Shown here: positions 6,340 to 51,600 of the stretch, piece by piece
Layout of the letters: each line of letters begins with the position of its first letter
Position numbering within the stretch: position 1 is the first letter of the stretch
From: Eukaryota sp. TZLM1-RC
Lineage: Eukaryota; Protista; Metamonada: BaSk clade
Assembly: GCA_040285825.1 (NCBI GenBank)
Contig: JAUPSS010000001.1
Coordinates: forward strand, 3,720,001-3,784,000
Length of the DNA stretch: 64,000 nt
Direction: 5' to 3'
The notes under the pieces: model-generated
Databases searched by the model: none
The model's input: only the letters and a program-made list of their open reading frames with translations
Told to the model about the DNA's origin: nothing
Made by a program: the position numbers and the translations under genes

Positions 6340-7760
6340 TTTTCAAAATCATCAATAAAATTCATGGCAGTTCTTCCAAGACATTCAAAGATATATCAAA
6401 TGGGCAAATTTGATAATCTACATGGCGAAGATGTTTCAATTCTTTCATAGGATTTGCATATTTTTTCCATTTGTACAATTCGGAGTCATCAAGCAGGGAT
6501 ACTTCAAATTGTGCATCGTTCAAGGCATCATTCTAACAAACATCCACTCTTACGACGTCAACAACATTCAAGACATCCATAAACGGGGGCACAATAAAGC
6601 AGCGCGTCCTTTTCCATATCCTGAATCTCTTACTTCATTTATATCAAGAAACCTCAACAACGGTTCTACAAATGATTCAATATGATAGGATTTACAGACT
6701 GCATGGATTTGATTACTGACAACATCATGCATACTGGAACGATAAGAAATAAATCTGTTGCAACTAAATATATGTGATAATATCAAACTAGCTCCACATT
6801 TACAAAACAAATCATTGGGCAAATTGCAAGGCCATAAATAGCAACGCATTGTCAAATCAGTAGTTCTCATTCAAAAATAAACCAAACCAATAATAAATTT
6901 GGAGAATTTGATTCAACAGAACTGCAGATGAACTCTCCTTCAAATCAATTAAAAAAATTGCAAAAGCAGGATTTTCTTGCTTAGTTGAGATAAGTCGAAC
7001 AAGGAAATTTCTACTTTCAAATTTTCTCAAAAGATATCATTGGAGCTTTTTCAACGCAAATTTTAAAGAATACAAACTTCTTTCTGGAATGTCTTGAATA
7101 GATATGGGGAAACAAGATTGTCATAATTCAGGAGACAAACTGGATACTTCTTCTCTTAAGTTATCGAGGAATAGGCTATTTGTAGTTTCAAGAAAGTTTT
7201 CGGCATAAGGATATCTTCTAGAAAATTCAAACACAAATTTTGTTCCACCACCAGCAAATGCAGCTTTTGTCAAATACTTTGATGAATTAAAACCAACACC
7301 ACAAAGTTGAACATGAGCAAAAATATGATTTTGCAAAATTGATGGATCAGCAGTCATTAAATAGCCCACAAAATCTGCACTTTTTTGTTAATTTGTCTAC
7401 AGAAATTGTAAGTTAATGATGGAGGTAAACATCGAAGCAAAAGGGTAATTGTTCCAGAACATATTTTCAAAAGAACAAATTCAAGATGCTTTTCCAATTC
7501 AAGGGTCTTAGTGACTTCAAGCTTTGCTTAATTCAATTTCAATAGTTATCAAGTGTTTTTTCAGCAGAACCGAGGTAACATCCAAAAAAGCAAAAACTAG
7601 ATGAACTATAATGAATTAATGGTACTTCCAGGGAATTATTTATTAATTTAACATTGTTTCTAAAAAAACAAAAACATTTTTGAACATTCAAATCAAGACC
7701 TATGGATTGATATAATGTAGCATATAATGATATAACTTTATTTCACAAAAGCCTACATGA
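6340..7760 (-). mobile_element. Degenerate CRE/SLACS-like retrotransposon
   Basis: ORFs 6568-6870 (CKC..H..C knuckle, ESFVEPLL) and 7121-7369 (AAFAGGG) are homologous to the other copies. Confidence 0.8.
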
Positions 7761-7881
7761 ACAAACCAAACTGTTCTTTTTTTGATGGGAAGTTTGTTCG
7801 AAAATGAAAGATGCAACTACGTTAGTGTTTGCAAAAAAACTGAATTTATCCTAAAAATGACATATAAATTGGCAAAACCAT

Positions 7882-8616
7882 TCAAGAACACGGCTCGAGT
7901 TTCCAACAAATCACTTCAAAAAGTTCTTTGGGCCAATTAGGAACTGACTCTCTTGCTACAACACTCAATCCTGCAGCAGTGAATAATTCCTCAAAGTAGC
8001 TACACGGCCTCGTGACGCTGTTGTCATCTTCATCAAAGGAAAGTCCCCCATCAAACGTCACATTCTCCTTGATGACGATACATCCTCCCTTGGACAAATG
8101 GGACTGACAAAACTCAAGTGATTCAACAACTTCGTCATCATTTAGATAAAGCAATACCCATTCGAGAAAATATACGTCATAAATTAAACTGCCAATTTGA
8201 CTTACAGATTGAAATCCTAAACAAAAACGATCCGCAATCCTCTCAGGAACTGACGATAACAACGTTTTTGAATGCTCTAAGAACCGCAAAGAAGGTTCTA
8301 AAAGGCTTATTTTGGCGTTACGAAAAACAGGCAACAAAACACTTTTGGTAATTCTCCCAATGCCACTGCCCACATCTATCACACTGTTAACTGAATTCAG
8401 ACCCATTGTAGGTGGGTGTCGTCTGAGAAAAGACAGTGAATGTGCAATATCTATGCCAGACAGATTACCGAAACCCCCAAGCATTCCATCAGCGTCTGTG
8501 GAAGCCTCATTCCAGTAGTCAGTGGTTTGCTTCGTCCAAGTAGAACCATTAGAGGTGGCTTGGTCTTGAAATTGATCCCATATGGCCCTGGATACCTCTG
8601 TAAAAGGCGATAACAT
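7882..8616 (-). CDS. NTMT1: Alpha-N-terminal protein methyltransferase (NTM1/Tae1 family)
   Basis: YW..GMLGGF, DVGSGIGRITK SAM motif, WVLLYL, IKEN..D..D.SVTR. Confidence 0.9.
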   Translation of the reverse strand: MLSPFTEVSRAIWDQFQDQATSNGSTWTKQTTDYWNEASTDADGMLGGFGNLSGIDIAHSLSFLRRHPPTMGLNSVNSVIDVGSGIGRITKSVLLPVFRNAKISLLEPSLRFLEHSKTLLSSVPERIADRFCLGFQSVSQIGSLIYDVYFLEWVLLYLNDDEVVESLEFCQSHLSKGGCIVIKENVTFDGGLSFDEDDNSVTRPCSYFEELFTAAGLSVVARESVPNWPKELFEVICWKLEPCS

Positions 8617-8706
8617 AAGGTATCAAGAGACTATGACCGTTCCACAAAAGAGGAGATGTGTGGCTCACTTAAGAAAGAGTTTAGCAAAAGGAAGTGAACA
8701 AGTATT

Positions 8707-9213
8707 ACTGTGAATTTCACTTATCATTAGGATTTCGATTTGAGTCGAGTCGAGTTAACTCGAGTCAAACTTATCTGACTCAACTCGACTCATTCTTTCA
8801 TCCATTGACTCGACTCGACTCATGAGTCAAACGAGTCGAGTTGAGTTGACTCATTCTTTCATCCATTGACTCGACTCGACTCGACTCATAAGTTATCATG
8901 CATTCCCCTGTGCAATTCACTCCTGTTTTCAACTTTCTCAATGTCTACTCACAGGTTGTAAGAGACATGTAGCGTCACTTGACAAAGACAATCATGATCT
9001 TCATCAATGGGCTACCTCACTTAAATACACCTACTGCTTTCACAGAACAAAGCTCCGCGACTTGATGTATCTAAGTCGATCTACCAAATGCCACTAAGGT
9101 ATTTGTAGATCGGTCTCAAAAGTTTTTCAAAAAAATCAAAAATAAAGAAAAAAACTCAAAATAAAATATCAGTTTTTCCAAAGTTTTTGTTTCTGTATGC
9201 TCAGGTTCCCCAT
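8707..9213 (-). ncRNA. Candidate Fanzor omegaRNA scaffold (copy 1, interrupted by insertion 8728-8892)
   Basis: Conserved non-coding region downstream of the Fanzor stop, with a hairpin at 9078-9111 and a terminal GTGAATT..AATTCAC stem; function inferred from position. Confidence 0.55.
8728..8892. mobile_element. 165-bp MITE-like insertion made of GAGTC/GACTC pentamers, flanked by a 7-bp TTATCAT duplication
   Basis: Absent from the 43.1-kb copy, which has a single TTATCAT; TTATCAT occurs at 8721-8727 and 8893-8899. Confidence 0.75.
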
Positions 9214-11157
9214 TCATCTTCTCAACAGAGCTTCTGGGCAAATGTATTTTTCCGGCCACAATTCCGCTTTCTTCTTGCTTTGAATATTTTTTGCAGCGGA
9301 AATATCTCTGTCACTATTTGACACTCAGTACAAATACGCATCTGCCATGAGCCTGCTTGAATATTCTCGGCCATGCAACAACTTGACAGTTTGCTTGTAT
9401 TAAATTCACTGGTTGACAAGTGCTTCATGTCCTTTTGATAACACAACCATTTTCTGAAAGCCCTTGCCGATCCATATCGATCGATTTTTCGGCAATGAGA
9501 AGGGAAATTAGCAGAACTTACAGCAAGATAGAGTTTTTCAGGATGTCCAGCGAGCCTTTGAAATTTGTTGAGACTCTCTCTGAACCGTCTCTCTTTTTGT
9601 CTGTGGTTATCAAATTTAATTATTGTCCATTTCTGGCGATTACTTTCCAAATACACTTTCCTCCCGACCAAATTTCAATGGTTCAAATATTGGTTGAAAT
9701 TTTGAACGGAATATTGATTGGGAGAGTGTTTACTGGGTGATGGTTTTGTCATGTATCTTCTGCCAGTTGGACAAGGGATAACTCCACATTGATAATCATT
9801 TAAGAAGTAACCACATAATCTTGATTGGCCCATATCAACGCCAATAAGGGACCTTTCAGTTAAAATTTCGACTGGATGTCTACGTCTTCGACGGGGCAAT
9901 TTTTTAGTGCCCTTGAACTGTGTTCCTCTGGTTTTGTTGGCATCATGGTCACTTTTCATTTCTTTTTTCGATCTTCGTTTCTTTTTCGGTGGTTCATCCA
10001 GCTCAACTGTGTTGGCTGAGTCATTATTTTTACCTTCAAATGTCAAAAGCAGTTCCTTACCATTAGTTTTCAATAAAAAATTTTTAAATATATTTTTCAA
10101 ACTTTTTCTGTTGATATTAAAATTTTCGTAAGGACATTGTTTGCATTTTCGTTTCAGACACGTATTTTTTGATGAACTTTGTTTTGGAAGATGATCCTTC
10201 GGTAAGTGGGCATTTTTTCACAGAGTGGAAAACATGTGAAGGTACCTCATGAAATTTAGAACCCTTATGAGAAGCTAAAAAAATTATTCTAAATTTCTTC
10301 CAGTAATGCATATGAGAAAAGAAAGTGAGTAAATATTGTGAAATTTTAAGTTTGAAGAGAAAAAGCTCATCAATTTCCTTTGATGAAAATGTGATTTTAC
10401 CATGTGAAGACATTAAAGAAGCAATGGCAGGAAATCTTTAAAGGAGATTCAAGATAAACTTACATGCATTTAATAAAAAGAATCTTTCTCTTGAATTATT
10501 CAGATTGAAATTGATGTAGTGTTCGAGAACAGAATCAACTACTACTTCTTCGGGTTGGGCTAAGGGTTCATTTGGTAAGAGAATAGATAATTTGACTGAG
10601 ACATTCGTCTTATCTAGAGCTCTACAGTGAGCACGAATAAAGTTTTTGTCCAGGATTCACAAATTGTAGGTAAACTTGTCTTCACGTTAGACGCCAATTG
10701 ACGAGCCCGACAAGCAAGGTAGAGAGAAAGCCCTTTTCTATTGATAAAATTACATTTCTGATCATTGAAGGAAAATATTGAATGGATTTCTATAAGGCAC
10801 TCAAGAATTTTACCATGAAGAAACAAGAGACCTGTCTTGTGGGCATTCAGGAAAAAATCCACTGTAAAAAATATGGCGTAATTGGCGTTGGCCTTTAGAT
10901 GTGGAAGGCTTTGGAAAAGAACCAGTGTTAATGACGGTCATAAAAATATTCCATACATCCTGTTCCACTAAAGCTCAAGATGCCAACGGAAAATTTAAAA
11001 GAAAAGATTGAAGCAATAAAGAAGCTCCATGACAAATCTCGGTGACCAATGGAAGGTCAGTCCGAATTTGTTGCACCGCTGCAGGGGTCAGCAGCGAGTT
11101 AAGTGCACAAGACCGAGTAAATTCACGTGACACAGAGTGGGTGTCTGTGTCACCCAC
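9214..11157 (-). pseudogene. Fanzor1 (eukaryotic TnpB/Cas12-related RNA-guided nuclease), ~650 codons, with stops and frameshifts
   Basis: RuvC-I IGVDMG (~9830-9848), RuvC-II SEFNTSK (~9390-9410), Zn motif CC..CTEC, RuvC-III DRDISAAKNI (~9283-9312); N-terminal SCALNS..VTEI..ASLL and KTNG motifs. Confidence 0.85.
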
Positions 11158-11184
11158 TCTAATTGAAATAAATTAAAATGTTGG

Positions 11185-11520
11185 AAAAAACTTATAAATC
11201 AACATCTAAATAATCTAACTCTCCCAAAACAAAACAACTAGATGCAACCCTGTCATAGTGAGCTTCAATAGAAAGCAGAACATCAAAAACCATCTTCAAC
11301 ATCCCCTTGAAAATAGAAAACACAATTCTATTCTGCCAAAACAATTTGTTTAAATCTCTGTTGGTGCTTCTCTTAACAATCATTTCAAAATCTGCCAAAA
11401 AACGTGAAGCAATGCGAGCAAGAGAAGCAAACAGAGCAATTGCAATGGATACAAATTGTATTTAGCATGCTGTTGGGTAGACAATTTGGACAAAGGTCCC
11501 GTGTATTCCTTTGATTTTGA
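11185..11520 (-). mobile_element. 3' fragment of retrotransposon family A
   Basis: ADFEMIVKR..WQNRIVFSIFKGML..DVDL*; homologous to 18110-18470. Confidence 0.85.
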
Positions 11521-11731
11521 AATTTTATATGTGTGAATAATAACAAAATAATAGTAATATAATAAAATTGATTTGAATCAAAATGTATTGTTTTAGTTGA
11601 AATAATTTCATCGTTGAAAAGTATCTTTACACTATATCTCATCATTGGATGATTTGCATGAGTATTATTGCAATTACAACTTATTCATCTCCAACCTTCA
11701 CATATCACCCATATATCATACTGCAACCAAT

Positions 11732-13008
11732 ATGCTTACACATACTCTCAAACCTATGGAAGAGCTGAGGTTTGTCGTGAAGGACGAACCTTGTACTATC
11801 AAGGTTTGTTTGCTCTCACATCATCTCATCCCAAGCTAGAAGAAGGTAAAGCTGAGCTTTTTGGCACAGAACTCGCTCCCCGAAAACCATACACACTTAA
11901 AGATCGTGTTGCTTCCATTTTCTCTTTCCATGGTGCTAAAATCTCCTTTCTCGGTAATACTGACACTCAGTACATCTCTACCGATACTTCTATGGACCAA
12001 TACATCTCCTTCCATGGAGAACTTGAAGATATCCGAAGCCGAGCCAAAACTGATCGTGATGGTAGAGGTCCTCGTGTACTCATAACTGGACCAATGGACT
12101 CTGGTAAATCCACCCTAACCCAATTACTCACCTCGTGGGCCGTTCGGTGTGATCACAGCCCCATTGTGGTTGATTTAGACGTTGGCCAAAACCATCTCAG
12201 TATTCCTGGAACAATTGCAGCCAGTGTTTTCAACAAACCCGTTGATTTGGAATCTGGTCTTGATGCTGATGACGCCCTAGTTTTTTGGTATGGGCATACG
12301 TCTTTACAAAAGAACACTTCTTTGTTTCTTCATCTAGTAAACCAACTGGCGATGACGGTGGATATGAGGTGTGATCAAGATGAACACATTCTGGAAAGCG
12401 GAATTGTTGTGAATACGTGTGGTTGGGTGGAGGATTTAGGGTTTGATGTATTAGTAGATTGTATCAAGGTACTTGAAATAGATTATGTTATAGTTCTTGG
12501 AAGGGATCTTTTAAGGGTGAAGCTGGAGCGGCATTTTCAGAGTGAACCTGTGCAGGTACGTGGATTTTCAGTGAGCTCCGGGGTTGTTTCTAGAAGCAGA
12601 GAGACAAGAACAAGCTACAGAAGGAGTAGGATTCATCGATATTTTAATGGTTTTAGTGGTGAATTAGCTCCACATTTATTTCAAATACCATTTAATTTAA
12701 TGTCGGTTTATAAAATTGAATCTTCTAAAATTGATGCCAGATTACGACCAATAGGAGCTGAACAGAAGCTGGAAGAGAATATGGTGAAGGAGGTAGCTAT
12801 AGATGAGTATGAAAGTCTTTTGCACTCAGTATTGGCGATATCATTTGCACAAATTGACCAACAGATTCCCGATTTTCCAGTCGCTGGGTTTGTTGTGGTT
12901 CAAAGCGTAGATATGGAAAGCCAACACATGGAGCTACTGTCACCATGCTCCAGAGAAGCTTTGCCAAGCACAAAGTTTGTAGTTGGTTCACTTCAGTGGA
13001 TTGATTAA
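11732..13008 (+). CDS. CLP1: Clp1 polyribonucleotide 5'-kinase / pre-mRNA cleavage factor; intron 11804-11835
   Basis: ELRF..KLEEGKAELFGTEL is restored after removing a 32-nt GT-AG intron; GPMDSGKST P-loop, DLDVGQ, NTCGW. Confidence 0.92.
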
Positions 13009-18079: not shown

Positions 18080-20564
18080 TTTTTACAAAATTTTAATTTT
18101 ATTCAAAACCTATAAATCAACATCTAAAAAATCCATTTCTCCCAGAACAAAAACACTAGATGCAACTCTCTCATAGTGAGATCCAAGAGAAAGCAAAGCA
18201 TCAGAAACCATCTTCAACATCCCCTTAAAAATAGAAAACACAATTCTATTTTGCCAAAACAATCTGTCGAAATAAATTAATAAATTAATTAATTAGTTAA
18301 TAAATTAGTTCTTCTCTTTACAATCATTTCAAAATCTGCCAAAAAACGTAAAACAGTTGGTGAAAGTGAACCAAAAAGGGAAAATACAAATGGATACAAA
18401 TTGTATTTTGCATGCTGTAGACTGGCCAATTTGGACAAAGGTTCATTGTATTTTTTGAGTTTGAAATTTTCAGCATTTGAAAGAGGATTATGAATTTCAG
18501 AATTAACAAGCCTTTCATTTGAGGCATTACAAGGATCAACAGACATTACATCCAATAAAATGAAACTTCCATCTAATCCAGGTAATATAACATCACCTCT
18601 ATTATTCTTATGAAAATCATCTTCAGCATCAAACAGATTTGACAACAGAGGTTCCAAGAAGGATTCAATTCTATGAGATTTGCACATACAATATAACTGG
18701 TCTCTTACAGCATCATGAACCTTGCTTCTAAAAGTAATAAAATGTTTACAATTTAACAAATGAGTAGTTGTAATTTCTCGAGAACATTTACAAATTAAAT
18801 TATGAGGTAACTTATCAGGCCAGATAAAGGAACGAAATCTCATATTCAGAGTCCAAGCAGAATCGGTTAAGAGAGTACCATAAACTTGTGGAATTGTTGT
18901 TACTAAGGCAGAAGAAGTACTGTCACACATATCTTGTAAAAGATTTGCAAAAGCGGGATTCTTTTTCTTGGCCAAGCCAAGTCTAACATCAAAATCCAAG
19001 CTTTCAAAAATCTTTGACAATTTTTGTTGAAGTTTTTTACAGCAAAACTGAAAATTAAAAAGAGATCGGTTTGGAATTTCTTGAATTGATTGAGGAAAAC
19101 ATTTGGTCCAAATTTGTGGCGGTAATTTTTCAAGTTCACAAGATAACTCATACAAATAGGGACTACAATTGGGGACTAACAGATGCGAATCATCAGGAAA
19201 TCTACGAGAAAATTCATAAATAAAATTTTTGCCACCACCCAAGAATGCTGATTGACACAAAATTGAAGACTTAGTAAAACCAATACCACCCAAATTTGGT
19301 GAAGAAAATAAATGGCTTTTCAACATTCCTGGTTCTACATCCAATAAATCAGCAAGAAATTCTGTTCTCAATGAATTAAAAGAACGACAAAAATCTAATG
19401 CTATGGAAGGAGCACAAGATCTCAAAATGTGGGTTATTCTCCCAGTGTAGCAAATTTTAAGCATGAAAAATTTAATATGCTTTTCTATATCTAAAGAAGA
19501 AATTGAATCAAGTTCAATTTTCATTTTTTCCAAAATAACTTGCAATTCATTCTGAATTTGAGGCACGTTTCCTCACCAACAACCAAGGAACTTAAAAGCA
19601 TCACTACTATAATTAGTAAAAGGGACAATAGAATCGTTTATCACGAGGTCTTGAGCAGAAGAGCCAATCAGAAGACAGTTGCTGGCATTAAGATGAAGCC
19701 CAATATCTTCATAAGAATCGGCAATTTCTTGAGCAACCAATTCTAGTAAATCAAATGAACCAATTAAGGGTATATCATCCATATAAGCAACTATTTTTAT
19801 AGAAGGGTATTTTTGCTTAATGATATTTAAAGTTTTGTGAATAGCTGAACAAAACAATAATGGGCCTAAAGGAGCACCTTGCTTCACACCAGAAGATGAT
19901 TTAAGACCAAATGAATTAAAAATTAAATCTTATTCTTTCCCATAAAAATGATAGAAAAAACTCGATTGGTCAGGAAAATCAGATTTAATAACTTCAAAAA
20001 TTGCTTCTCGCTTTACAGAATTAAAAAAGGTATCAGAGGCAATAGCAGCAACAGAAGCACCATCAATTGTTTTGATTCCAAATTGATGAGGATTCAAAAC
20101 AGTAGAAGCTTTGTCTTTGACACGATCGAAGACAATTGATGCCAGCAAACGAAAAAGAGATTCACCAACAGCAATTGGGCGTATTCCATCAGCTTTGATT
20201 CCGTTTCCAGGCTTTACTAAAGCAATCAGACGTGCAGTGAGTAATTCAAATGGAGGATTAACTTTCAGAACAATTAATTGTTGAAAATAATGGGCTAGAT
20301 CATCAGCAATTTCGGGAGCACTGGAACACGTTATTTTTAAGAGATCAAAAGAAATTCCAGATGGTCCTGCTGCTTTCCCCTTTGGTAATTCTTGAATAGC
20401 TTTGAGAAGTTCAATTGCAGTAATAGGATATTTCAAACCAAAAAGGACACACATCAGGCTTGCTGCACTTGAAATTTTCTCGAGGATGCAACTTTTGAAG
20501 TTTCTCAAGGGTATCAGAGTTTACATCAGCCAAAGAAGAGGAAAACAAGGACTGCTTTGCGGCA
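18080..20564 (-). mobile_element. CRE/SLACS-like non-LTR retrotransposon (family A), defective
   Basis: KAAGPSG, IRPIAVGE, YMDD, knuckle and RGDVILP..LDV..K.KKY RLE; highly similar to 49120-51600. Confidence 0.93.
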
Positions 20565-42454: not shown

Positions 42455-43084
42455 TTACACTTCATTTTTGGACTCATCCTTCTGCTCTGGTGCTGGTGCA
42501 GGCGACGGTGGGATAACCTCTTGCTTGGCACTTCTTTTAATTCTAAAACCTCGCTTCACCTCAAAGGACATCCTTTCACGCAGGTCCACTGGAGCCATGA
42601 TCTTGTCAAATTCTTCTTCATCAATGGCAGCGTTACCATCAGCATCAGCCTCTGTCATTGCTTTCTTTGCAATAACATCAAGTTCTTCCTCTGACATAAG
42701 TTCATTCATCAGTAGTCGAAGCACGGCAACGAGATCACAGTGAGTAATTTCACCAGAGTTGTCCACGTCATACATCTTGAAAGCAGCTTTGATTTTGAGG
42801 CTCTGGGGACTTTTGGCAGAGAATGGCTTTAGAGTTTCTAGCATATCTTCAAAGGTTAGCTTTTCCTTTTCGTGAGGACAGAGGGCTAGAACTCTAGCCC
42901 GCAGAGGATTGTTAACAAGTTCGGGAAGCCATAAGAGTTCCGACCGGGTGATGTGATCATCTTTGTCAGTATCAAGTGCAAGGAATCTGTTGTGTAAGTT
43001 GGTGATTTCCGATGTGGAGAAGTTAAAGCGACTGTTGAGATCTTGCCTTTGCTCTAGTGAGAGCTTTGAAGTGGTTCCACCCAT
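42455..43084 (-). CDS. Calcineurin B / CHP-like EF-hand protein with N-myristoylation motif
   Basis: MGGTTSK, RF..LD, PEL..NPL..R, AFKMYDVDNSGEI, ADADGNAAIDEEEF. Confidence 0.85.
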   Translation of the reverse strand: MGGTTSKLSLEQRQDLNSRFNFSTSEITNLHNRFLALDTDKDDHITRSELLWLPELVNNPLRARVLALCPHEKEKLTFEDMLETLKPFSAKSPQSLKIKAAFKMYDVDNSGEITHCDLVAVLRLLMNELMSEEELDVIAKKAMTEADADGNAAIDEEEFDKIMAPVDLRERMSFEVKRGFRIKRSAKQEVIPPSPAPAPEQKDESKNEV

Positions 43085-43125
43085 GTTTTGAAGAACAAAA
43101 TAAAATTTAGAAAATTTCACTTTCA

Positions 43126-43457
43126 ACTGTGAATTTCACTTATCATGCATTCCACTATAAAATTCACTCCTGTTTTCAACTTTCTCAATGTCTACTCACA
43201 AGCTGTAAGAGACATGTAGCGTCATTCGACAAAGACAATCATGATCTTCATCAATGGGCTACCGCACTTAAATACACCTACTGCTTTCACAGAACAAAGC
43301 CTCGCGGCTTGATGTATCTAAGTGGATCTACCAAACGCTACTAAGCTATTTGTAGATCGGTCTCAAAAGATTTTCAAAAAAATTAAAAAAATAAAAAACT
43401 CAAAATAAAATATAAGTTTTTCCAAAATTTTAGTTTCTGTATGCTCAGGTTCCCCAA
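43126..43457 (-). ncRNA. Candidate Fanzor omegaRNA scaffold (uninterrupted copy)
   Basis: Hairpin at 43325-43358 and terminal stem at 43129-43167; homology with copy 1 ends sharply at 43126. Confidence 0.6.
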
Positions 43458-43570
43458 TCATCTCCTCAACAGAGCTTCTGGGCAAATGTATCTTTCCGGC
43501 CACAATTCCGCTTTCTTCTTAATTTGAATATTTTTTGCTGCCTGAATATCTCTGTCATATACTATCTGTC
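43126..43570 (-). mobile_element. 3'-end copy of the Fanzor1 element (last ~36 codons plus candidate omegaRNA)
   Basis: Encodes QIVYDRDIQAAKNI..LLRR*; closely similar to 8707-9320. Confidence 0.85.
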
Positions 43571-49119: not shown

Positions 49120-51600
49120 AAATTGTGTTTACGTGGTCGTTATGGTGCCGCAAAGCAGTCCTTGTTTTCCTCTTCTTTGGCTGATGCAAACTCTGATACC
49201 CTTGAAAAACTTCAAAAATTGCATCCTCGAGAAAATTTCAAGTGCAGCAAGCCTGATGTGTGTCCTTTTTAGATTGAAAATCCTGTTACTGCAATTGAAG
49301 TACTTAAAATTATTCAAAAATTACCAAAGGGGAAAGCAGCAGGCCCATCTGGAATTTCTTTTGATCTCTTAAAAATAGCGTGTTCCAGTGCTCCCGAAAT
49401 TGCTGATGGTCTAGCCCATTATTTTCAACAATTAATTGTTTTGAAAGTTAATCCTCCATTTGAATTACTCACTGCACGTCTGATTGCTTTAGTAAAGCCT
49501 GGAAACGGAATCAAAGCTGATGGAATACGCCCAATTGCTGTTGGTGAATCTCTTTCTCGTTTGCTGGATCAATTGTCTTCGATCGTGTCAAAGACAAAGC
49601 TTCTACATTTTTGAATCCTCATCAATTTGGAATCACAACAATTGATGGTGCTTCTGTTGCTGCTATTGCCTCTCATACCTTTTTTAATTCTGTAAAGCGA
49701 GAAGCAATTTTTGATGTTATTAAATCTGATTTTCCTGAGCTATCGAGTTTTTTTTTTACCATTTTTATGGGAAAGAATAAGATTTAATTTTTAATTCATT
49801 TGGTCTGAAATCATCTTCTGGTGTGAAGCAAGGTGCTCCTTTAGGCCCATTATTGTTTTGTTCAGCTATTCACAAAACTTTAAATATCATTAAGCAAAAA
49901 TACCCTTCCATAAAAATAGTTGCTTATATGGATGATATACCCTTAATTGGTTCATTTGATTTACTAGAATTGGTTGCTCAAGAAATTGCCGATTCTTATG
50001 AAAATATTGGGCTTCATCATAATGCCAGCAAATGTCTTCTGATTGGCTCTTCTGCTCAAGACCTCGTGATAAACGATTCTATTGTCACTTTTACTAATTA
50101 TAGTAGTGATGCTTTTAAGTTCCTTGGTTGTTGGTGAGGAAACGTGCCTCAAATTCAGAATGAATTGCAAGTTACTTTGGAAAAAATGAAAATTGAACTT
50201 GATTCAATTTCTTCTTTAGATATAGAAAAGCATATTAAATTTTTCATGCTTAAAATTTGCTACACTGGGAGAATAACCCACATTTTGAGATCTTGTGCTC
50301 CTTCCACAGCATCAGATTTTTGTCGTTCATTTAATTCATTGAGAACAGAATGTTTTGCTGATTTATTGGATGTGGAACCAGGAATGTTGAAAAGTCAATT
50401 ATTTTCCTCAGCAAATTTGGGTGGTATTGGATTTACTAAATCTTCAATTTTGTGTCAATCAGCATTCTTGGGTGGTGGCAAAAATTTTATTTATGAATTT
50501 TCTCGTAGATTTCCTGATGATTCTCATTTGTTAGTCCCCAATTGCAGTCATTATTTGCATGAGTTATCTTTTGAACTTGAAAAATTGCCGCCACAAATTT
50601 GGACCAAATGTTTTCCTCAATCAATTCAAGAAATTCCAAACCGATCTCTTTTTAATTTACAGTTTTGCTGTAAAAAGCTTCAACAAAAATTGTCAAAGAT
50701 TTTTGAAAGCTTGGATTTTGATGTTAGACTTGGCTTGGCCAAGAAAAAGGATCCCGCTTTTGCAAATCTTTTACAAGATATGTGTGACAGTACTTCTTCT
50801 GCCTTAGTAACAACAATTCCACAGGTTTATGGTACTCTCTTAACCGATTCTGCTTGGACTCTGAATATGAGATTTTGTTCGTTTATCTGGCCTGATAATT
50901 TACCTCAAAATTGAATTTGTAAATGTTCTCGAGAAATTACTACTCATTTGTTAAATTGTAAACATTTTATTACTTTTAGAAGCAAGGTTCATGATGCTGT
51001 AAGAGACCAGTTATATTGTATGTGTAAATCTCATAGAATTGAATCCTTCTTGGAACCTCTATTGTCAAATCAGTTTGATACTGAAGATGATTTTCATAAG
51101 AATAATAGAGGTGATGTTATATTACCTGGATTAGATGGAAGTTTCATTTTAGTGGATGTAATGTCTGTTGATCCTTGTAATGCCTCAAATGAAAGGCTAG
51201 TTAATTCTGAAATTCATAATCCCCTTTCAAATGCTGAAAATTTTAAATTCAAAAAATACAATGAACCTTTGTCCAAATTGGCCAGTCTACAGCATGCAAA
51301 ATACAATTTGTATCCATTTGTATTTTCCCTTTTTTGTTCACTTTCACCAACTGCTTTACGTTTTTTTGGATGATTTTGAAATGATTGCAAAGAGAAGAAC
51401 TGGGAGAAATTTCAACAAATTGTTTTAGCAAAATAGAATTGTGTTTTCTATTTTTTAGGGGATGTTGAAGATGGTTTCTGATGCTTTGCTTTCTCTTGGA
51501 TCTCACTATGAGAGAGTTGCATCTAGTGTTTTTGTTCTGGGAGAGATGGATTGTTAAGATGTTGATTTATAGGTTTTGTATAAAATTAAATAAAAAAATA
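49120..51600 (+). mobile_element. CRE/SLACS-like non-LTR retrotransposon (family A), defective
   Basis: Same RT, knuckle and RLE motifs as 18080-20564; A-rich tail at ~51580-51600. Confidence 0.93.

Follow-up and report, generated by a model that had tools for sequence, protein, structure and literature searches.

The minus strand of positions 11147 to 8707 in a 64,000-nt window of DNA from strain TZLM1-RC (GenBank assembly GCA_040285825.1, contig JAUPSS010000001.1) very probably holds a dead, 5'-truncated copy of a 2.4-kb Skoliomonas element whose only gene codes for a Fanzor, a nuclease that would cleave DNA under the guidance of an omega-RNA made from the element's 3' tail. The window is the whole stretch analyzed, and coordinates given without a locus name refer to it. 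The organism, listed as "Eukaryota sp. TZLM1-RC", has been published as Skoliomonas litria, a free-living flagellate; its DNA in the window is low in GC (about 35%), eukaryotic, and rich in long intron-less open reading frames (ORFs). Judged from their sequences, the intact sister copies of the relic are a very divergent and so far undescribed Fanzor lineage, of which HMMER finds no members outside three Skoliomonas strains. The window copy itself is a case of ordinary decay and is useful only as a marker. In our opinion, the locus is ordinary, and the family is moderately interesting.

The first line of evidence is the alignment of the window copy to the DNA of an intact paralogue. Locus L009 of the same genome codes for P0034 (KAL0223451.1), a protein of 651 amino acids (aa), and is 91.8% identical to the window from position 11147 (codon 2) to the stop codon at 9214-9216. 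Searches with tblastn place collinear blocks of proteins P0007 and P0010 across 11124-9220 (E 1e-14 to 1e-38), and P0003 and P0004 also align to the relic. The GenBank annotation has a single ORF of 94 aa inside it. The coding part of the relic, with its motifs and lesions, is as follows.

9214-11147, minus strand: body of the Fanzor pseudogene, equivalent to codons 2-651 of P0034 plus the stop codon 9214-9216, placed by the DNA alignment to L009 and by tblastn
10207-11147, minus strand: N-terminal, mostly helical region resembling a recognition (REC) lobe, equivalent to residues 2 to about 315 of P0034, with the helices assigned from a low-confidence AlphaFold2 model only
9834-9836, minus strand: RuvC-I aspartate codon GAT in GVDMG, equivalent to D444 of P0034
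9405-9407, minus strand: alternative RuvC-II glutamate codon GAA in SEFNTSK, equivalent to E587 of P0034
9321-9380, minus strand: zinc-ribbon (TNB) segment, consisting of SSCC (9375-9380), 14 residues, and CTEC (9321-9332)
9304-9306, minus strand: RuvC-III aspartate codon GAT in RDISAAKNI, equivalent to D622 of P0034
10975-7, 10810-2, 10801-3, 10438-40 and 9675-7, minus strand: five in-frame stop codons
+1 at 10769, -1 at 10647/8, +1 at 10170 and -4 at 9313/4, minus strand: four frameshifting insertions or deletions (indels)
Window copy relative to L009: two in-frame deletions, of 12 nt and 3 nt
Between 9314 and 9313, minus strand: the 4-bp deletion, which separates the zinc ribbon from RuvC-III

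A preliminary description of the window had read this region as five collinear ORFs of a Fanzor1 nuclease of about 650 residues with all three catalytic residues retained. The collinearity is borne out by tblastn and by the alignment to L009, and P0034 has the expected length; the number of pieces needs revision, there being about eight frame segments. One of the five ORFs, at 10614-10862, is out of frame in its N-terminal half, and an in-frame stretch at 10441-10646 had been missed. Three-frame translation of the minus strand, which was used to locate the motifs, finds GVDMG, SEFNTSK, CC..CTEC and DRDISAAKNI where that description had put them: LIGVDMGQ, SEFNTSK and SSCC...CTEC share one frame, and DRDISAAKNI lies in the next, which ends at the stop codon 9214-9216. 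The codons for D, E and D are all present. The frameshift that it had noticed before RuvC-III is indeed a 4-bp deletion; the four missing bases are carried by the second copy in the window and by six copies on other contigs, where the in-frame reading is Q-I-V/I/E-Y-D/Y-R/P-D.

The window copy is certainly inactive, with no start codon, five stops, four frameshifts and a tail split by two insertions. Its ATG and the first 156 nt of the element are gone, the 152-nt leader common to three full-length copies is missing, and the 5' end has been replaced by an unrelated repeat resembling a long terminal repeat (LTR). Four of the five stops fall in the N-terminal region at 10207-11147, together with the +1, -12, -1 and -3 indels. 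Compared with L009, the window copy has a dS of 0.18 and a ratio of nonsynonymous to synonymous divergence (dN/dS) of 0.34. Thus, most of the divergence dates from a time when both lineages coded for protein, and the inactivation came later.

The LTR-like repeat, at 11170-11526, has further copies in the window at 18088-18470 and 51237-51590, and it also adjoins the Fanzor loci L002 and L004. At the point of 5' truncation (11134-11160), ten Fanzor bases, CACCCACTCT (11134-11143), recur inverted as AGAGTGGGTG (11151-11160) after a spacer of 7 nt; this fold-back junction might have originated in hairpin-type end repair.

The second line of evidence is the existence of a protein family with intact members. 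An exhaustive phmmer search (HMMER) of the piece 9222-9671 against 1.84 billion representative proteins returned nine proteins, six of which are fragments 82-89% identical to the query; more distant are P0006 (382 aa; 43%) and P0007 (659 aa; 41%; E 7e-14). A profile search extended the family to 23 proteins, all from strains TZLM1-RC, GEM-RC1 and TZLM3-RCL (RCL below). P0011 belongs to a 90%-identity cluster of 82 members; the listed ones are 153 to 651 aa long, and P0034 is among them. Family members are annotated only as "hypothetical protein". Intact copies had been foreseen elsewhere in the genome, and P0034 is one; strain GEM-RC1 adds P0047 (648 aa) and P0051 (646 aa). Natural intact paralogues served for the full-length analyses, and resurrection of a consensus, as had been proposed, is therefore unnecessary. 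The two GEM-RC1 paralogues differ by dS 0.107 and dN 0.029 (dN/dS 0.28), which indicates that the protein was under purifying selection while the family spread.

The third line of evidence concerns the identity of the protein. By its profile matches, the family belongs to the TnpB superfamily, which agrees with the Fanzor-type membership proposed earlier. Thus, the Cas12f1-like TNB domain (PF07282; Pfam gathering score, 26.3 bits) is found above threshold in intact members of three strains, namely P0034 (27.6-29.4 bits), P0047 (29.4), P0007 (28.5-29.5) and P0006 (32.6). A profile of the C-terminal half (A6), compared with 177,635 distinct PDB sequences, matched only TnpB-derived chains: UnCas12m4a (E 1.8e-4), LaTranC (0.035) and a chain named "Transposase" (0.49), all over RuvC-II, the zinc ribbon and RuvC-III. 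A phmmer search of P0007 against PDB gave no match. In language-model features, the C-terminal 360 residues score 0.97 to giant-virus and green-algal clusters of proteins with DUF8286 and TNB; the Skoliomonas proteins do not match the DUF8286 model itself, even at E 10.

Fanzors are distinguished by a near-universal DPG in RuvC-I and by a RuvC-II glutamate that is shifted from the canonical site, where Gly or Pro is found, to six residues before the zinc finger (PMC10711439; PMC10530073). The catalytic triad of P0034 (D444, E587 and D622) has the right order and spacing and is invariant across the three strains. The invariant glutamate lies in E-x-x-T-S, 140-149 residues after D-x-G, and is followed by a 14-residue gap, CxxC, and then RD-x-x-AA-x-NI. 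The canonical glutamate site, 37 residues upstream of E587, is Gly in the intact members (LAVGSANF or IAMGDAAF) and Ser in the window copy (LAVSSANF). All motif spacings of the Skoliomonas family are within the published Fanzor ranges. In place of CxxC, the first zinc knuckle reads SSCC, its cysteine having moved from +7 to +9. Judged by these motifs, the active site of the family is of the Fanzor type, yet it falls outside the strict published pattern.

The fourth line of evidence is the structure of the element, in particular its 3' tail. An intact element measures about 2.38 kb (L009 4849 to about 7232): after a 152-nt leader comes an ORF of 651 aa that has no intron, and a tail of about 270 nt completes it. 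The Fanzor ORF is the only one that it carries. The left boundary, 152 nt before the ATG, is common to three copies. The right boundary reads ...GTGAATTTCACAG, a loop of about 15 nt and GTGAAATTCACAGT; it is common to at least six copies, and the flanks beyond it all differ. In GEM-RC1, the repeated unit reaches about 1.2 kb upstream of the Fanzor ATG and has no ORF there (L010:1812-3000, L011:1815-3000), compared with the 152-nt leader of TZLM1-RC. In the window, the tail has three features.

8707-9213, minus strand: non-coding 3' tail, candidate omega-RNA scaffold and right end; the shared sequence ends ...GTGAAATTCACAGT (8720-8707)
9128-9188, minus strand: 61-nt T-rich insertion in the tail
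8721-8892, minus strand: 165-nt insertion rich in GAGTC/GACTC pentamers, resembling a miniature inverted-repeat transposable element (MITE), with a 7-bp ATGATAA duplication, in the loop of the terminal stem

One tail alignment comprised eight copies, and another compared two species (TZLM1-RC and GEM-RC1). Between the two species, the tail is 79% identical and the coding sequence 62% (68% in the RuvC half). The tail of each species folds independently into the same set of stems, which GAGAC...GUCUC closes and a terminal stem of 11 bp follows, with z-scores of -4.95 and -4.62; a further z-score for the tail was -3.6. In the consensus fold, 15 of the 17 changed pairs are still paired, four of them having changed on both sides; in frame-shifted controls, the figure is about half. 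A conserved, folded tail of this kind is what an omega-RNA scaffold should look like, and it is our candidate for one. Rfam matches within 8000-12000 were all below threshold and attributable to chance, and the weak ones to microRNA precursors reflect the hairpin nature of the MITE-like insertion.

Taken with what is known of TnpB and Fanzor, these features suggest how an intact element would work. Its ORF combines a predicted helical region at the N-terminus and a predicted wedge-like part rich in beta strands with a basic linker resembling a nuclear localization signal (NLS) and a split RuvC; the zinc ribbon lies between RuvC-II and RuvC-III. As in TnpB and Fanzor systems, the tail would be transcribed as the omega-RNA scaffold, and the guide would come from the DNA that directly flanks the right end. 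Homology predicts that the protein-RNA complex cuts DNA by means of D444, the relocated glutamate E587 and D622.

Several observations weigh against this reading. No terminal inverted repeats were found in the 2.38-kb unit, and no target duplication in L008, the sole copy with both ends intact. Neither a consensus for a target-adjacent motif (TAM) nor a transposase was found, and the three left flanks have no motif in common. The pairing evidence for the tail comes from no more than two lineages, whose sequences also served to derive the structure. Solved Fanzor1 and Fanzor2 chains were not matched even by the family profile. DPG is present in RuvC-I only in the RCL relatives P0007 and P0006, all TZLM1-RC and GEM-RC1 members having DLG and the window copy DMG; DLG and the SSCC knuckle keep the family outside the strict regular expression that Yoon et al. 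(PMC10711439) give for Fanzors. AlphaFold2 models have a mean confidence too low to be usable (predicted local distance difference test, 37.5 for P0034 with an alignment of 15 rows, and 38.1 for the C-terminal 352 aa with 8 rows), the alignments holding three lineages only, which accounts for the low values. Finally, the ORF pieces of the window alone match nothing in Pfam, NCBIfam or PDB; for PF07282, this is explained by the 4-bp deletion, which splits the TNB domain.

Some of these observations are accommodated by a different history, to which we give limited credence: a TnpB homologue may have entered Skoliomonas independently, for example from a giant virus or a bacterium, and would then be an "unaffiliated" Fanzor lineage, neither Fanzor1 nor Fanzor2. 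Unaffiliated Fanzors have been reported by Jiang et al. (PMC10530073), and no solved Fanzor was matched here. The nearest language-model clusters consist of giant-virus proteins, 326-430 aa long and carrying DUF8286 and TNB, the DLG of two of the three strains is the TnpB-like form of RuvC-I, and an element with neither inverted repeats nor target duplication resembles IS200/IS605. Against independent entry stand the DPG kept in the RCL relatives and the rearranged glutamate of all members, which defines Fanzors and their bacterial forerunners; moreover, a length of 651 aa with a long N-terminal region fits Fanzor1 better than the compact Fanzor2 (520 aa, PMC11832414).

The same considerations bear on the narrower assignment to Fanzor1, which was claimed in the preliminary description and is not sustained: no solved Fanzor was matched, RuvC-I is DLG or DMG, the first knuckle is SSCC, and eukaryotic transposon ends and a transposase were not found. 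The size of the protein (651 aa, compared with 520 aa for the Fanzor2 protein ApmFz2; PMC11832414) and its N-terminal region of about 300 residues favor Fanzor1; the nearest neighbors in feature space and the lack of a eukaryotic transposon context do not.

The Skoliomonas family can be compared with several known systems. Like Fanzor1 (SpuFz1 of Spizellomyces punctatus, PDB 8GKH; Fanzor1a-d, Jiang et al. 2023), it is eukaryotic, multi-copy and intron-less, with proteins of about 650 aa that have a long N-terminal extension, a basic NLS-like stretch and a relocated glutamate by the zinc ribbon, and with a structured non-coding 3' region that reaches the right end. Unlike Fanzor1, it has a DLG or DMG in RuvC-I in strain TZLM1-RC, an SSCC first knuckle, an NLS-like stretch that is internal, just before RuvC-I, and no detectable sequence or profile similarity to the solved Fanzor1; no hAT, Mariner/Tc1, Helitron, Crypton or other transposon context was found for the element. 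With Fanzor2 and the TnpB-like proteins of giant viruses, its nearest language-model neighbors (0.97), the family shares the rearranged glutamate, and the omega-RNA of ApmFz2 measures 247 nt, compared with about 270 nt for the Skoliomonas candidate. The Skoliomonas proteins are, however, about 130 aa longer, do not match DUF8286, and have no IS607-type TnpA serine recombinase nearby.

The bacterial TnpBs with an alternative glutamate (TnpB2 or "pro-Fanzors", of IS200/IS605 and IS607) resemble the family in that a zinc ribbon interrupts their D-E-D RuvC, inverted repeats and target duplications are missing, and the guide is presumed to come from the right-end flank. The Skoliomonas family, for its part, belongs to the nuclear genome of a eukaryote, is confined to Skoliomonas, carries about 300 additional residues at the N-terminus and lacks a TnpA partner. 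Cas12m and TranC (PDB 23vu, 9jfo) are the only solved structures that the family profile matches over RuvC-II, the zinc ribbon and RuvC-III; they are prokaryotic and associated with CRISPR or transposons, and the similarity is limited to about 60 residues.

The manner in which the element has spread can be approached through its other copies. In GCA_040285825.1, at least nine contigs have copies, and the genes around them are eukaryotic, for example those for Clp1, NTM1, kinases and WD40 proteins. The second copy in the window, at about 43.5 kb, does have the four bases that repair the frameshift of the first, as had been described; it is, however, only a 3' fragment of 443 nt, and a full-length second copy was rejected, homology being confined to 43568-43126. 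The two window copies are 92% identical, and the second abuts an unrelated repeat at 43568/43569. Both contain the 61-nt T-rich insertion. Of six copies on other contigs, five lack it and L007 retains about 11 nt; the window copies are thus each other's closest relatives. Among nine TZLM1-RC copies examined, five have the common 3' end and differing internal starts (L009 coordinates 5005, 5450, 5744, 6331 and 6846), and the RCL copy L003 is likewise 5'-truncated with its 3' end intact.

43126-43568, minus strand: second copy, 3' fragment with the last 36 codons (QIVYDRDIQAAKNI...LLRR, stop 43458-43460) and the tail
11147 and 43568 in the window, L002:7571, L005:6106, L006:5300 and L003:5758: internal start points of 5'-truncated copies

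Differing 5' starts with a common 3' end are compatible both with 3'-anchored copying and with later deletion. The first possibility, that the family spreads through RNA or by copying from its 3' end (retroposition, or abortive repair synthesis from the right end) rather than by cut-and-paste or peel-and-paste, appears unlikely to us, the truncated copies of TZLM1-RC and RCL notwithstanding. The 3' end has no poly(A) and no target duplication, other repeats adjoin at least two of the truncation points, which later insertion and deletion would explain, and the sample is small.

Even less can be said for a domesticated host gene of which the window copy would be a duplicated pseudogene. Such a gene would have no transposase, inverted repeats or target duplication, and its intact copies would be under purifying selection, as is observed here. 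The reading was rejected as very improbable because the family is dispersed and multi-copy with a common 3' end: there are dozens of copies on many contigs, with differing flanks and a sharp 3' end in common, most of them are decayed or truncated, and the tail is conserved as in elements bearing an omega-RNA. That the motifs are a chance resemblance in non-coding DNA, as the failure of the window pieces alone to match any Pfam, NCBIfam or PDB entry might suggest, is refuted for practical purposes by phmmer, by the collinear tblastn alignment of a 35%-identical orthologue (to E 1e-38), by 91.8% identity over 1.93 kb to an intact 651-aa ORF, and by a family that scores above the Pfam threshold.

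A related element with an additional nuclease was found in strain TZLM3-RCL (GCA_040285805.1). At L001:3923-7980 and L003:5758-8996, an EXO1-like 5'-3' nuclease stands ahead of the orthologous Fanzor and was once in one frame with it. The EXO1-like part scores above the Pfam thresholds for XPG_N and XPG_I, matches human EXO1 from its residue 1 (E 2e-43), has the acidic active-site motifs and is followed by a linker of about 240 aa. The 2A-like sequence DGDVEPNPG stands directly before the nuclease start, MGIKNLL. Each RCL copy has one break, and the breaks lie at different places; an ancestral continuous ORF of about 1,330 aa can therefore be inferred. An EXO1 domain upstream of the window copy was considered and rejected: tblastn found none there, and the TZLM1-RC and GEM-RC1 elements start at their own Met. 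Our literature search found no published description of a natural EXO1-Fanzor fusion.

A bolder proposal, which we consider possible but rather unlikely, is that P0034, P0047 and P0051 act as RNA-guided nucleases and represent a deep Fanzor lineage not sampled before, which would be the first from Metamonada and would have a variant zinc knuckle, an omega-RNA of about 270 nt and no recognizable transposase. In RCL, according to this proposal, the nuclease would be made as a single polypeptide with the EXO1-like 5'-3' exonuclease behind the 2A-like DVEPNPG site, a natural "cut-and-resect" fusion. If the copies were active, they would extend RNA-guided nucleases to metamonads and would provide a variant active-site and zinc-finger layout, together with a naturally exonuclease-fused relative, for comparative and engineering work. 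The intact natural copies and their defined candidate omega-RNA make activity, TAM and guide length testable without reconstruction. A literature search combining Fanzor with metamonads found no paper, the sole co-mention of Fanzor and Trichomonas being an unrelated review of AlphaFold 3; the Skoliomonas genome paper does not mention TnpB, and the Fanzor surveys consulted, which predate these genomes, do not include the family.

Some minor observations concern individual loci. The ninth phmmer match, P0008 (591 aa), consists of about ten tandem repeats of about 55 aa and matches an out-of-frame translation of the Fanzor C-terminus (query residues 118-145), which suggests a satellite-like tandem array derived from the 3' end of some Fanzor element. 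At L004, genes annotated DNA_pol_B_exo1 and DUF8286 adjoin one family copy (L004:5663-6439, 7250-7918); a Pfam rescan of the DUF8286-annotated gene gave no match. The copies at L004 and L007 are cut inside the tail at points no more than 5 nt apart.

It should be noted that in six of seven copies that could be judged, the exception being L008, the right end is followed, after 3-90 nt, by the start codon of a host gene that has the same orientation. In the Skoliomonas family, the element thus ends near the host ATG, not at it; in the window, the downstream genes code for an NTM1 methyltransferase and an EF-hand protein. The intervals from right end to ATG are as follows.

8616-8707 and 43081-43126 in the window
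L002:9369-9433
L006:6200-6238
L003:8996-8999
L001:8021-8065

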